A program made the position numbers and the translations under genes. Below the pieces are notes generated by a model. It was given only the letters and a program-made list of their open reading frames with translations. It had not been told where the DNA came from and made no database searches. From Octopus bimaculoides (Eukaryota), in assembly GCF_001194135.2 (NCBI RefSeq), contig NC_069004.1:35549455-35613454 (forward strand): 64,000 nt of DNA. Direction: 5' to 3'. Below are positions 9,648-15,600 of the stretch, piece by piece. Positions within the stretch are counted from its first letter, which is position 1; every line of letters starts with the position of its first letter.

Positions 9648-12600
9648 GTATCCTTTTCGTTTTGATTTTCTTATTTTATCTCTGATTGTTTAGTTTTTAT
9701 TCTGTTTACATTCTTTCTTGTTTCGTGTCCGTTTCTCTCACCTCTCACTCGCATCTATATATTATATAAATATATTTACTCACACACCTCCGATGTATGT
9801 ATCATCTATAGAATTAAACACATACTTGTGTATATATCATATAAATATCTACATCTTTATGTGTATAATCTATATTTATATCATCTATAGAACTAAAAAC
9901 ACACACATGTGTGTATATGTTATATAAATATGATATGATATACATCTTGAGTGTATATAATTTACTTGTGTACCATCTATAGAATTAGATACTCACATGG
10001 GTGTATATGTGTGCATGTACACGTGTATATTATATGCGTATGTTATATTTGTTATGAATGAATCCAGTGACTTCGAGGTTTCACTGGATATGTGATGTTT
10101 TTTTTATATTCCTACTGACAGTTTAAATAAACCACAGACCCAGCAATACTTCGAAGTCACTATCGATTGCATTATAAAAATTAATACCTGGCTTAATGCC
10201 GTAACACATGGAGTGAGTATTGAGTCCTTTATTAAGAGTTCTTCGTTTTCTTTTTTATGCTTATATAAACACTCGGTCATCCTGTATTGCGTACTGACAC
10301 ACACGCACCCATAGTATTTAGTAGAGAACCCTGTGGGGAACTGAACCGCAGAAGAAGCTTCCCCCTTTTGCAAGTGTTTTGGTCCTTAAACTCCTTACAC
10401 TCTAAAGGGCCGCATCTAGATCACGACTCGTAGATACCCGTCCACTGTTACAGTCTGGATGGCCAAGGTGCCCCAGTGTGTGTGTGTGTGTGTGAACATA
10501 TAAATGCAAAACATGGGAGAAAATAGTTTTTGGATACATAAGAGTTAGATATGGGGGTTTTTATTGAAGCTGTAAAAACTTTTCAAACTGTTACTCTTGA
10601 GTTTCCCGTAACCAACCTTCAGATATGGGTTTTTAACGTTATATTTAGTGTGTAAAGTGTTTACATATCCTCTATGTTTATAAACAAACAGTGAAGAACC
10701 GTCGAGTGGTTTGTATATATTTTCTATTGTATAACCAGTGACACCATCGGTCTATGGTTGAGATCTTAGAAGGGCAAATGTGGAGGTGATGGCGGCGGGA
10801 AACGGAACCGAGTGAAGAGGCATTGTTTTCTCAAGGGCAGCAGTTGTCCGAGTCGTAGAACTGGTTCCTCAGGCAAGTAGAGTTACCTGCCTTGACAACA
10901 AACGGCCTAACAACAATAATAATGATTTCAAATTTTGGCACAAGGCCAGCAATTTAGGAGACGGGGTGGGATAAGTCGATTATATCGATACTAGTGCTCA
11001 ACTGGTACTTATTTTATCGACCCCCGAAACGATGAAAGTTAAAGTCGACTTCGGTGGAATTTGAACTCCGACAGTAAAGATGGACAAAATGTGGCGAAGC
11101 ATTTCGTCCGGCGTGCTAATGATTTTGCCAGCTCGCCGCATTAAGCAATAACAATATTAATACAAAGGTACCTTGGGGTGTTGTTTATTACCAGGTCTCC
11201 CTTCATTCAGCAGAACTATAATCAAAGGCGTTCCATTTGTGATCACCCTGCCTGTTATTTATAAACATTGTACTCCCTAAAAACACTTTACCAATGTGTA
11301 CTTGTTTAGCACTGGGGTTTACACGGAAGCAGCAAATCTATTATCAAAGGCTTTCCAGCCATGACCACCCCATCTGCTCAGAAAGATATTTTGGAAACTG
11401 CTCTGGTTGCAAGATAAAAAAAAAGGCAATGTCCAACTGATTTTATAAGGGCAAAATTTGATATTGTTTTCTTGTAACGCCCAAATCTTGGGGGTTGCAA
11501 TCTGGGTTAAAAATCCTGCTAGAAATAGCAGCCAAATTTCCTCAAAGCAAACCTACCTTGAATGAATAGAATAAAATTAAAAAAAGACGTTAGATAATGT
11601 AGTTCTCGACATCCCTGAAAAGGTGAGATTGCCATAACTGGAATATGTTTATCATCAGTCACTTGACCTGAGGCCAAAATAACAGTTTATGTAATTCATT
11701 TATGCGAAGACACTCTATTTCAGGAAAAATTTATGCAATGTAAGGATATCACTTAAAGGAATTTAAATGATGTTATTTTATTATATAATGGCTTTATATA
11801 ATACAGTTTTATTATATAATAAATATAGCCTGGATATATTTTATTATAAATGTCAAACACCACCCCATACTCGCCTCTGCGATTCTTTGTTTACTCATCT
11901 ATGGTACTGTATTTTCATTTATTAATTTTTAGGCATGAAAATACTTATCAACTGCAGAAACCCATGATGTACTGAGGGCGCAATAGGTGACCCGCGATAT
12001 GGCAATTGATTATATACACACACACACACACACACACATATATATATATATATATACACACACACACACACACACACACACACACACACACATATATATA
12101 TATATATACACACACACACACACACACACACACACACGTGTATATATATATATACATATATATAGCAAATGTCATGGTGCTTTAGGTGTATGAGCTGTAA
12201 TTCCATATTCTGAGTCATATTTGTTGATGACCGATGAGAAGAGAAGTATTTCTTCCTGAGGATTCTGCTGGCATCAGTGGCCCTTCAGATAAACTCCAGT
12301 TTCCTCACTGGTGGCATCATGTGTGGGGCATCAAAATCTGAGCCTTTGCTTCTCCGTATTCGAATCGGTGCCTTGTACCCTCCCTGTATGTCATAAGGGG
12401 ATTGGCATGAGGGTTAAGCTATCTGGTCATTAAAACCTGGCTTTAAGAAATCTATGGGACCCCATCCCAGCATGGAATAATAAACAGGTGTAAAACAATG
12501 ATAATGATGATGCATATGATTAATTAAGATCATCATCGTCCCATTAGCACTGTCATCATCATCATTACCACCACCATAACCATTAACATCATTATCATTA

Positions 12601-15600
12601 CTACGACCATCATCATCACCACTACTATTATCATCACCATCATCATATTCACTATCATCATTATCACCAGCATCATCATCATCAAATAAACTCTTGGCTA
12701 GAGAAGTTGTTAAAATACCTCAACAGTGAGTAGTGCCAAGCAAGATTCTTGACAGCACAGAATTTCAATGTAGTCATTCTACTTGCTAGAAATAACAGCT
12801 AAATTTTCAAATCAAATCAAATCATCTTAGGAAATGGAAGGACATAGTTTAATAAGGTAGACTATATCCCAGAAGAATAATTTAGGATGGGCATGGTGGG
12901 AACAGGTTTGATCATAAGTCTAGCTTCATCAAGGTTGACCTAGGGCTAAATAACATTCACAGCAACACACACACATTTAGAAATACGCTTCTGAAGATTC
13001 TATCTTGTTAATGCTTCTGTGTTTTTTTGTGTGTGTGTGTGTGTGCGTGCATATATACATGTGTGTTTATATTTTTATAAAATCTTATCAATTTATCTGT
13101 CTGTTCTCCTCACTCTCTCTGTCTCTTTCTTTCCATTTGAATCTATCTATCTATCTATCTATCTATCTATCTATCTATCTATCTATATATATATATATAT
13201 ATATATATATATATATATATATATANNNNNNNNNNNNNNNNNNNNNNNNNNNNNNNNNNNNNNNNNNNNNNNNNNNNNNNNNNNNNNNNNNNNNNNNNNN
13301 NNNNNNNNNNNNNNNNNNNNNNNNNNNNNNNNNNNNNNNNNNNNNNNNNNNNNNNNNNNNNNNNNNNNNNNNNNNNNNNNNNNNNNNNNNNNNNNNNNNN
13401 NNNNNNNNNNNNNNNNNNNNNNNNNNNNNNNNNNNNNNNNNNNNNNNNNNNNNNNNNNNNNNNNNNNNNNNNNNNNNNNNNNNNNNNNNNNNNNNNNNNN
13501 NNNNNNNNNNNNNNNNNNNNNNNNNNNNNNNNNNNNNNNNNNNNNNNNNNNNNNNNNNNNNNNNNNNNNNNNNNNNNNNNNNNNNNNNNNNNNNNNNNNN
13601 NNNNNNNNNNNNNNNNNNNNNNNNNNNNNNNNNNNNNNNNNNNNNNNNNNNNNNNNNNNNNNNNNNNNNNNNNNNNNNNNNNNNNNNNNNNNNNNNNNNN
13701 NNNNNNNNNNNNNNNNNNNNNNNNNNNNNNNNNNNNNNNNNNNNNNNNNNNNNNNNNNNNNNNNNNNNNNNNNNNNNNNNNNNNNNNNNNNNNNNNNNNN
13801 NNNNNNNNNNNNNNNNNNNNNNNNNNNNNNNNNNNNNNNNNNNNNNNNNNNNNNNNNNNNNNNNNNNNNNNNNNNNNNNNNNNNNNNNNNNNNNNNNNNN
13901 NNNNNNNNNNNNNNNNNNNNNNNNNNNNNNNNNNNNTATGTTTCAGTGATTGGACTGTGGCCATGCTGGGGCACCACTCTGAAAAGTTGTTAGTTGAACA
14001 AAATGACTCCAATACTTATTTCTTTAAACCCGGTACTTATTCTATCGGTCACCTTTGTCGAACCATTAAGTTACGAGGACACAGACACACGCACACGGAC
14101 ACTCACACACACACACACGCACACATATAAAATGGGCTTCTTTCAGTTTCTGTCTACCAAACCCACCCACAAAGCTTTGGTTGGCTGAAAGCTATAGCAG
14201 AAGACACTTGCCCAAGGTGTCACACAGTGGGACTGAACCTGGAGCCATGTGGTTGGGAAGCAAGCTTCTTACCACACAGCCACGCCTGTCAATGTTTGCT
14301 TTTATCTTATAATAAAAGCAGTTTTACATTAAATTGAAGAATTGCTCAATATGTTTGGTAGAGAGTGTTGATAGTGACTTCGAAGTTTTTGCCAGCTAAG
14401 CCAAGGTCCAAGAGATTGCCTCGCAAATTGAAACCGCACACACACACACACACACATCACATCAAGCATGTGTACACAGACACACATATATCATAAAGTC
14501 TGTCTCAAGTCTTGAGACTCATTAGGCCAGAGCTTGTCTTGGTTTCTGGGATTGATAAAAGACTGACAATTCCAGACTCCCCCTGGATAGGACACTAGTC
14601 CATTGCAAGGGTAAACTCCATTTACTGCTGGTAGTCATTTCAGCTGAGTAGACTGAAATAATATGAAATGAAGTCTCTTGCTTCAGGGTAGAATGTGCTG
14701 CCTCGTCTGAGAATTGAACCCACAGATTAATTATCATGGACCCATCTCCATTACATACGTAAGATGCTTTTGTTGTACTTCCTTAACGTTGGCCCTTAAA
14801 AGCTGCCTCAGAGAAAAAGACAGAACCCAAAGAAAGTAAAGGTAAGTGTGTTTCATCATCATCATCATCATCGGTTAACGTCCATTTTCCATGCTGGCAT
14901 GGGTTGGACGGTTTGATGGGGGACTGGCAGGCCAGGAGGCTGCACCAGGCTCCAGTCTGATCTGGCAATGTTTTCTACAGCTGGATGCGCTTCCTAAGGC
15001 CAACCACTCTGAAAATGTAGTGGGTGCTTTTTATGTGCCACTGGCACAGGAGCCAGTCAGGTGGCACTGGCATCAGTCACGTTCAGATGGTGCTTTTTAT
15101 GTGCCACTAGCACAGGAGGGCTGGCATCCACCATGTTCGGATGGTGCTTTTTATGTGCCACCGACACAGGGAGCCAGTCAGGTGGCTCTGGCAACAACCC
15201 ATGCAGGGGACAATCTTATGCTTGTGCCTCCCAGGTGTCACAGTTGATCTCAAAGCAGTTCAGTGACGCTTTGAAGATATCCTTGAAGTACTTTTTCACT
15301 CCTCTTTGCATATGCTTCTCCACCAGTTTGTTGTAAAACAGTCTCTTGGGGACCAGATGTATGATGTGTCTGTATGTATATTATATATCTGAATGTGTGT
15401 ATGCTTTCATGTACCTCAGTGTTTGTTTGTGTATCCTCTGTGCAGGTCCCACCTTTAACTGGCAAGATGCCCTTAATTTGGAAAGTCAACTGACAGAAGA
15501 AGAAATTCTGATCCGTGACCAATTTCGGGATTATTGTCAAGAAAAACTTATGCCCCGTATATTACTGGCTAACAGGCATGAAGGTAAGTCATAAGAAGTT

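Follow-up and report, generated by a model that had tools for sequence, protein, structure and literature searches.

Octopus GCDH carries a probable U12-type first intron that appears ancestral to cnidarians and bilaterians and U2-type in vertebrates

The first intron of the glutaryl-CoA dehydrogenase (GCDH) gene of Octopus bimaculoides separates a short 5' coding exon from an exon of only 39 nt and is bounded by signals resembling those of minor introns, which raises the questions of which spliceosome removes it and how old this state is. We addressed these questions in a window of 64,000 nt (the whole stretch of DNA analysed here), in which a hand-built model, reproduced by exact spliced alignment, places the whole GCDH coding region at 9536..25864 on the forward strand, with 11 coding exons encoding 443 aa. 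The model is 100% identical to RefSeq XP_014790932.1 and is the same protein as UniProt A0A0L8I5M6; the product carries the Acyl-CoA_dh N, M and C domains (PF02771, PF02770, PF00441) and shares 73–82% identity with animal GCDHs, which identifies it as a glutaryl-CoA dehydrogenase. Coding exon 1 (9536..9647, forward strand; hand model, exact spliced alignment) begins with the ATG at 9536 and encodes the mitochondrial presequence; because it is 112 nt long, intron 1 is in phase 1. The mature conserved enzyme begins (PTFNWQD...) in coding exon 3 (15446..15583, forward strand), found by tblastn with 76% identity to human, and the octopus product can be aligned with human GCDH exon by exon. Most long ORFs here are artefacts of the assembly gap or of simple repeats, and one is a reverse-transcriptase fragment. 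Scanned in full against Rfam at gathering thresholds, the window returned no RNA family, neither an snRNA nor an intronic snoRNA.

Intron 1, a predicted GT-AG U12-type intron, spans 9648..14802 on the forward strand. Its donor, GTATCCTTTT at 9648-9657, lies immediately 3' of ...TCCATGC, and the U12-type 5' splice site GTATCCTTT (9648..9656, forward strand) matches the consensus /RTATCCTTT at 9/9 positions; the U12-type branch-point sequence TTCCTTAAC (14779..14787, forward strand) likewise matches TTCCTTRAY at 9/9. A distance of 16 nt separates the last branch adenosine (14786) from the 3' splice site, slightly more than the 11–13 nt optimum given for U12 introns (PMC3584512) and within the range of 10–23 nt found across the eight U12-like orthologues described below, among which Lytechinus has 23 nt. 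The termini are matched (GT at 9648-9, AG at 14801-2), and the AG at 14801..14802 (forward strand) is the one used, the junction reading ATGC|CTGC both in the RefSeq models and in L002, an octopod Logan RNA-seq contig (run SRR3401912). From -22 to -3, 12 of 20 nucleotides are pyrimidines, most of them supplied by the branch motif, and the stretch 3' of that motif, gttggcccttaaaag, forms no distinct polypyrimidine tract, a feature that U12 introns lack (PMC3584512); the other introns of the octopus gene mostly have 14–19 pyrimidines in 20, with two lower values of 10 and 11. An earlier note on this DNA had proposed the donor, branch point, AG, micro-exon, GTAAGT, second AG and the start at 15446, and all of these positions were confirmed in the sequence.

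It could be argued that the major (U2) spliceosome removes intron 1 and that the U12-like motifs are coincidental. Both spliceosomes accept GT-AG termini, and chance alone predicts one match per 9-mer in the window: GTATCCTTT has a single occurrence in 128 kb (both strands) versus 0.70 expected from shuffles, and TTCCTTAAC a single one versus 0.59. While a single match anywhere in the window is unremarkable, the two matches fall exactly on boundaries set independently by the protein model, and the chance of both doing so is roughly 1e-9. GTATCC, with C at +5, is also a poor match to U1, and the pyrimidine tract is absent. We then turn to other animals, for which 110 GCDH introns were mapped in 11 species, including two vertebrates (ray and echidna) and the sponge Oscarella; an intron was called U12-like by consensus matching (donor at least 8/9 and branch at least 7/8), with the 102 other GCDH introns serving as internal control. 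Exactly 8 of the 110 introns are U12-like, all of them intron 1, against 0/102 of the others. They belong to two octopuses, oyster, Lingula, horseshoe crab, sea urchin, acorn worm and coral, that is, to Cnidaria, Mollusca, Brachiopoda, Chelicerata, Echinodermata and Hemichordata, so that the orthologous intron of 7 further species from 6 phyla carries both octopus motifs and all non-vertebrate eumetazoan orthologues (8/8) are U12-like. Removal by the major spliceosome is thus very improbable.

Intron 1 contains an assembly gap of 711 N (13226..13936), which lies wholly within the intron and touches no coding sequence. As this gap, of estimated size, separates exon 1 from the micro-exon, the gene model across it could be an assembly artefact, with a wrong exon 1 or a coding exon concealed in the N run. 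However, window positions 12764-13133 and 13937-14757 match 13864-14223 and 15868-16677 of the O. sinensis sequence L001, both flanks agreeing in order and strand, with no N in L001 there, and the ~1.6 kb of O. sinensis DNA between the flank matches is simple-repeat and SINE-like, non-coding sequence. This collinearity with gap-free O. sinensis DNA supports continuity and makes the frame independent of the gap. Transcript L002 joins the equivalents of exon 1, the micro-exon and exon 3 with nothing intervening, and the layout of the N-terminus is the same in O. sinensis and Argonauta proteins, which makes an artefact exceedingly unlikely. A hidden exon in the gap is ruled out by the O. sinensis sequence together with L002. 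The length of 5.2 kb originally given for the intron calls for a qualification: its boundaries were confirmed, but the nominal 5,155 nt includes the gap and is an estimate. The orthologous intron of O. sinensis is 13,674 nt long and keeps the donor and the AG, with TTCCTTAAT as its branch site. Given what is demonstrated, namely the signals, the arrangement of the exons, conservation and a colinear transcript from a related octopod, we consider it very likely that octopus GCDH intron 1 is a genuine GT-AG U12-type intron, excised by the minor spliceosome.

The exon that follows (coding exon 2; 14803..14841, forward strand, phase 1) codes for the last part of the presequence region and contributes 14 residues when split codons are counted. 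It is followed by intron 2 (14842..15445, forward strand), a U2-type intron in phase 1 (GTAAGT ... ctctgtgcag). Size limits for micro-exons are ≤51 nt in broad definitions and 3–27 nt for the neuronal class; 39 nt satisfies the broad definition only, and inclusion of the exon is read from the RefSeq and UniProt models and from L002. The claim that this is an in-frame exon was borne out, with its GTAAGT donor at 14842, although it is not "hidden", as the earlier note had it, being already annotated in XP_014790932.1, A0A0L8I5M6 and the O. sinensis and Argonauta models. The micro-exon is 100% identical in O. sinensis, compared with ~83–88% for the flanking intron, and the length of its peptide is preserved in Argonauta. 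L002 (92% aa identity) is indel-free across both junctions, which read ATGC|CTGC...AAAG|GTCC, and its micro-exon is 84.6% identical and colinear.

Three joins keep the frame: inclusion of the 39-nt exon, a start at 14812, or a skip from 9647 to 15446, the last having been correctly predicted as in frame. Substantial alternative splicing, yielding isoforms with different presequence ends, could exploit the latter two, both frame-preserving, and the selection of 3' splice sites in U12 introns is reportedly prone to error (PMC3584512). The second in-frame AG (14810..14811, forward strand), a possible minor alternative acceptor that would shorten the exon by 9 nt as had been suggested, is 25 nt from the branch A, near the 23 nt actually used in Lytechinus. 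Against this, all models and L002 splice to the first AG and contain the exon, with the AG at 14810-14811 used in no protein model nor in this octopod transcript; P-A-S, coded by the first 9 nt, is retained in Argonauta and L002; and the incompatibility of U12 with U2 sites makes exon skipping across their boundaries rare (PMC3584512). Substantial alternative splicing is, in our estimation, unlikely.

The same comparison bears on the age of the intron. Intron 1 is always in phase 1 and 44–62 nt upstream of a conserved W codon, exon lengths downstream of it being otherwise invariant among the GCDHs compared; its homology rests on phase, spacing and shared signals because the N-terminal region is poorly conserved. 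Ray and echidna share the phase-1 position, directly upstream of a 36–39-nt exon ending the presequence (36 nt in echidna), but unlike octopus their intron 1 is U2-type, with GTGAGG/GTGAGT donors and a long pyrimidine tract (16–18/20). At -1, 7/8 of the U12 orthologues have C and the two U2 orthologues have G, and at +5 a C gives way to G. A U2-type human IVS1 would fit the same pattern, the U2 sequences having been read in ray and echidna and the human +5 G taken from the name of a founder mutation in human GCDH, IVS1+5G>T (PMC5703630); the human details given in the earlier note are consistent with these data. A conversion route via +5 C>G and -1 G has been described (PMC2831892, PMC7367187). 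The distribution supports a U12-type intron 1 in the cnidarian–bilaterian ancestor, putatively retained in most phyla sampled, and a change to U2 type on the line to vertebrates, a direction that we infer. The proposal that an ancestral minor intron underwent conversion in vertebrates is therefore supported, with U12-like introns in 6 phyla, U2 introns in ray and echidna, and orthologues that are not uniformly U2 (8/11 animals have a U12-like intron 1). That "this lineage keeps" the intron holds for octopus and is an understatement, since most non-vertebrate phyla sampled keep the U12 state.

Alternatively, the U12-like state might have been gained independently, from U2, in several invertebrate lineages, with the vertebrate U2 state ancestral. 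One U2-to-U12 conversion is reported, in Diptera (PMC2831892), and GCDH of the sponge Oscarella is intronless at the U12 position, its first intron (-11 nt relative to the W codon) being aligned with intron 2 of the other animals. Yet this would require two high-information motifs to have been gained independently at least 4–6 times at one and the same phase-1 site, as opposed to one loss along the vertebrate stem, and conversion is considered almost exclusively minor to major (PMC10639083, PMC2831892). Oscarella, whose GCDH introns are compacted (47–69 nt), says little on the pre-eumetazoan state because it lacks any intron at this position. Repeated gain thus appears hardly credible, and retention of an ancestral U12-type intron remains the preferred reading.

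The established view of minor splicing suggests how intron 1 would be removed. The U11/U12 di-snRNP would recognise the intron as a unit, U11 pairing with the GTATCCTTT donor and U12 with TTCCTTAAC, leaving the branch adenosine bulged, after which U6atac would take over from U11. The acceptor would be the first AG a short distance (16 nt) downstream, and a pyrimidine tract would not be required. U12 introns cooperate with flanking U2 sites (PMC3584512), and the strong U2 donor GTAAGT 39 nt downstream probably aids definition of the tiny exon through U1-to-U11/U12 contacts. Because U12 donors are incompatible with U2 acceptors, the 9647 to 15446 skip should be disfavoured, though in frame, and constitutive inclusion of the micro-exon is therefore expected. 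The micro-exon supplies a charged, poorly conserved stretch ending the mitochondrial presequence, and the switch on the vertebrate line would have involved donor changes including -1 C to G and +5 G. The suggested "minor-spliceosome control" of the octopus enzyme would be only a corollary of this dependence. A further proposal, which we consider doubtful, is that the U12 intron and the next 33–48-nt exon have been a selected unit since the cnidarian–bilaterian ancestor. If so, the U12 signals, intron-defined and rich in information, together with U12/U2 incompatibility, would ensure that an exon below the size suited to ordinary exon definition is included, GCDH output would be sensitive to minor-spliceosome activity in most invertebrates, and vertebrates would have escaped this dependence by conversion, leaving the +5 G that is a human disease site.

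GT-AG U12-type introns are catalogued in U12DB, IAOD/intronIC and MIDB, and octopus GCDH intron 1 is a normal member of this known class. Like the catalogued introns, it has a rigid /GTATCCTTT donor and TTCCTTAAC near its 3' end, is single among U2 introns, has a non-zero phase and occupies a site conserved over long distances. Unlike the classic hosts of minor introns, which are "information-processing" and ion-channel genes, GCDH encodes a mitochondrial catabolic enzyme. Minor-to-major conversion has reportedly been treated in the model of Burge 1998 and studied in Lin 2010, Moyer 2020 and Larue & Roy 2023. The GCDH case resembles the documented conversions in its GT-AG subtype, in its retained position and changed class, and in -1 and +5 changes that match the route, and departs from the published conversion model, which favours phase-0 introns, in being in phase 1. 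Exon definition by U12–U2 pairs was reportedly described by Wu & Krainer 1996. The octopus arrangement is like such pairs, reviewed in PMC3584512, in combining a U12 3' splice site, a short exon and a strong U2 5' splice site, but its exon, at only 39 nt, is shorter than those usually considered comfortable for exon definition. Molluscs, O. sinensis among them, have many minor introns and show enrichment (PMC10639083). A full-text literature search found no paper pairing GCDH with "minor intron" or "U12-type", although the intron may be listed in database tables, and neither GCDH nor glutaryl is mentioned in key minor-intron papers, PMC10639083, PMC2831892 and PMC7367187 among them.

GCDH intron 1 leaves current knowledge of how minor introns work unchanged. 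Gene finders blind to U12 signals could overlook the 39-nt exon, although current annotations did not. These findings add a mitochondrial enzyme of lysine and tryptophan catabolism to the genes that would have carried minor introns in early animals, and they offer what appears to be a clean, well-anchored case of minor-to-major conversion on the vertebrate line, in which position, phase and micro-exon were kept. Loss of the minor spliceosome should affect GCDH in cephalopods and many other invertebrates, but not in vertebrates.

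Matches from tblastn, for which a human GCDH sequence served as probe only, placed nine further conserved exons on the + strand downstream of the micro-exon, and we set the splice sites on them by hand. The resulting open reading frame (9536-25864, +; 11 exons, 443 aa) starts at the ATG at 9536 in coding exon 1 (9536-9647, 112 nt, ending ...TCCATGC), directly followed, from 9648, by the intron 1 donor GTATCCTTTT. On the same strand lie the branch motif TTCCTTAAC (14779-14787), the acceptor AG (14801-14802), the micro-exon (14803-14841; 39 nt, then GTAAGT) and a normal intron 2 acceptor, ctctgtgcag, directly before 15446, so that the splice-signal letters are exactly those reported in the earlier note. 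Searching a large protein collection returned a protein identical to this model (100% identity over 100% of the length), glutaryl-CoA dehydrogenase, mitochondrial [Octopus bimaculoides] (XP_014790932.1, UniRef100_A0A0L8I5M6). The window therefore comes from O. bimaculoides, and the micro-exon, described earlier as hidden, is already contained in public gene models. The same N-terminal layout, ...LLSSS(M/L) P ASEKK... G PTFNWQD, is present in the O. sinensis model XP_029650613.2 and in two Argonauta hians models. XP_029650613.2 ends at 369 aa, without the last two exons, and this shortening probably reflects a fault of assembly or annotation because a 100-N gap follows closely (O. sinensis locus, 48235-49359). 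Separately, the intron 3 acceptor (17640-17665, +) has no pyrimidine tract but 12 consecutive A immediately ahead of its AG (tctcttttaaaaaaaaaaag|ATTTTG), as it does in O. sinensis.

Counted over both strands of the window, the donor GTATCCTTT occurs once (0.70 expected), as does the branch motif TTCCTTAAC (0.59 expected), and a single motif match somewhere in the window is unremarkable. Both single matches sit exactly at the intron 1 boundaries, which the protein sets independently of the motifs, and by our own arithmetic the joint chance of this is about 1e-9. We wrote an exact protein-to-genome spliced aligner, which recovers the octopus model, and ran it on the orthologous loci of ten other animals, calling introns U12-like by consensus matching (donor at least 8/9 and branch at least 7/8, 8-35 nt from the 3' end). 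Exactly 8 of the 110 GCDH introns were U12-like, each of them intron 1, and no other GCDH intron in the 11 animals had a donor of at least 8/9. All eight donors scored 9/9; the branch sequence is TCCTTAAC in O. bimaculoides (branch A 16 nt from the 3' end), Lingula anatina (10 nt), Tachypleus tridentatus (10 nt), Lytechinus pictus (23 nt) and Ptychodera flava (14 nt), TCCTTAAT in O. sinensis (16 nt) and Magallana gigas (11 nt), and TTCTTAAC in Porites harrisoni (15 nt). The proposed match of the octopus intron to the U12 consensus signals thus holds, and, judged by its sequence, intron 1 is typical of the GT-AG U12 class in all features tested.

An N run (13226-13936) falls wholly within intron 1. 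The 5.2 kb first given for the intron (5,155 nt) includes this assembly gap and is unreliable as a length; the GCDH reading frame is independent of the gap. The O. sinensis intron 1 contains no N, and the gap flanks are collinear with it on the same strand (window 12764-13133 with 13864-14223 of the O. sinensis locus, and 13937-14757 with 15868-16677), so that continuity across the gap is supported. A coding exon missing in the N run was ruled out by the non-coding O. sinensis counterpart, about 1.6 kb of microsatellite and SINE-like DNA between the flank matches, and by the agreeing octopod transcript described below. Most of the excess length of the O. sinensis intron (13,674 nt) is a long, expanded repeat array at about 6200-13400 of that locus, which the AC-rich window segment 12003-12164 matches dozens of times. 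In intron 2, a SINE-like element (GGTGCTTTTTATGTGCCAC...) holds a 54-nt tandem duplication (15067-15170, +), and copies turn up at several sites of the O. sinensis locus. The window has six further gaps (1340-1349, 38858-38867, 39705-40080, 53865-54402, 55073-55082 and 62265-62531), and several long ORFs from a mechanical listing are just N runs or microsatellite. Downstream of GCDH, a 162-aa ORF (28795-29283, +) encodes part of a reverse transcriptase (Pfam RVT_1, E=4.8e-17) and is probably a LINE remnant; the readable part of ORF 53835-54890 (-), which enters the gap at 53865-54402, resembles the C-terminal part of a retroelement polymerase; the ORF had no Pfam match.

Transcript evidence comes from an octopod Logan contig (run SRR3401912), a 1,560-nt intron-less mRNA whose 444-aa product is 92% identical to octopus GCDH. 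It aligns to the O. bimaculoides coding sequence with zero indels over both junctions, reading ...TCTATGC|CTGCTTCAGAG... at exon 1/micro-exon and ...AGCAAAG|GTCCTGCC... at micro-exon/exon 3; a related octopod therefore joins the equivalents of 9647/14803 and 14841/15446, two of the predicted junctions. The third, through the second AG (14810-14811), was used neither in gene models nor in this transcript. The frame is kept with the micro-exon included, started at 14812 or skipped (9647 to 15446), confirming on the coding model that the suggested alternative joins are in frame.

Because the presequence is too variable for residue-by-residue alignment, homology of intron 1 rests on phase, spacing and exon lengths. 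Throughout the species compared, the intron is in phase 1 and precedes the conserved W of the F(N/D/S)W.D motif by 44-62 nt; the exon after it is 33-48 nt, merged with the next exon in both ambulacrarians; the conserved intron that comes next sits at +124 nt in 11/11 species; and the lengths of the exons further downstream (124, 110, 130, 223, 104, 126, 161) recur widely. Micro-exon and next exon form one exon in sea urchin (4203-4382 of its locus, 180 nt) and acorn worm (4391-4573, 183 nt); Ambulacraria have lost intron 2 and retained the U12-type intron 1. An intron at the U12 position is absent from the sponge Oscarella, in which the first intron is the counterpart of intron 2 elsewhere. 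Porites has 14 GCDH introns and Oscarella 12, versus 10 in most bilaterians; extra positions (e.g. +187 nt) are common to these two and vertebrates and absent from sampled protostomes and ambulacrarians, a pattern that suggests lineage-specific intron losses.

At the same position a U2-type intron is present in a ray (Mobula hypostoma) and in an echidna (Tachyglossus aculeatus), with donor GTGAGG or GTGAGT and 16-18/20 pyrimidines before the AG. The simplest history would place a U12-type intron 1 in the cnidarian-bilaterian ancestor, retained in molluscs, brachiopods, chelicerates, echinoderms, hemichordates and corals, with conversion to U2 on the vertebrate line. With eight U12-like non-vertebrate orthologues, this supports the earlier proposal of an ancestral minor intron converted in vertebrates; the octopus does keep it, but so do six species outside octopuses. 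The -1 nucleotide is C in 7/8 U12 orthologues and G in 2/2 vertebrate U2 orthologues, and C at +5 gives way to G, in agreement with the route put forward for minor-to-major conversion through -1 and +5 changes (PMC2831892; PMC7367187). The human founder mutation IVS1+5G>T (PMC5703630) implies G at human +5, and echidna has a 36-nt exon, in line with the human details cited earlier.

Under the established model (PMC3584512), U11 and U12 would act as one di-snRNP, U11 pairing with the donor and U12 recognising the branch site; U6atac would then replace U11, and closeness to the branch point, with no need for a pyrimidine tract, would decide which AG serves as acceptor. U12 splicing may be boosted via exon-definition contacts with U2-type sites that flank it, here a consensus GTAAGT 39 nt downstream (PMC3584512). 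Since a U12 site generally cannot be spliced to a U2 site (PMC3584512), the in-frame skip should be rare; as U12 3' site choice is error-prone (PMC3584512), the AG at 14810-14811, which is 25 nt away from the branch A, could occasionally serve as acceptor instead. Because intron 1 is of the U12 class, GCDH expression would require the minor spliceosome; the regulatory control suggested in the earlier note would be a hypothetical step beyond this dependence. Minor introns have already been scored genome-wide in O. sinensis, Lingula and many other compared species (PMC10639083), so this intron is very likely in survey tables; no searchable paper ties GCDH to minor introns. Intron 1 is a neat case of deep conservation combined with vertebrate conversion.
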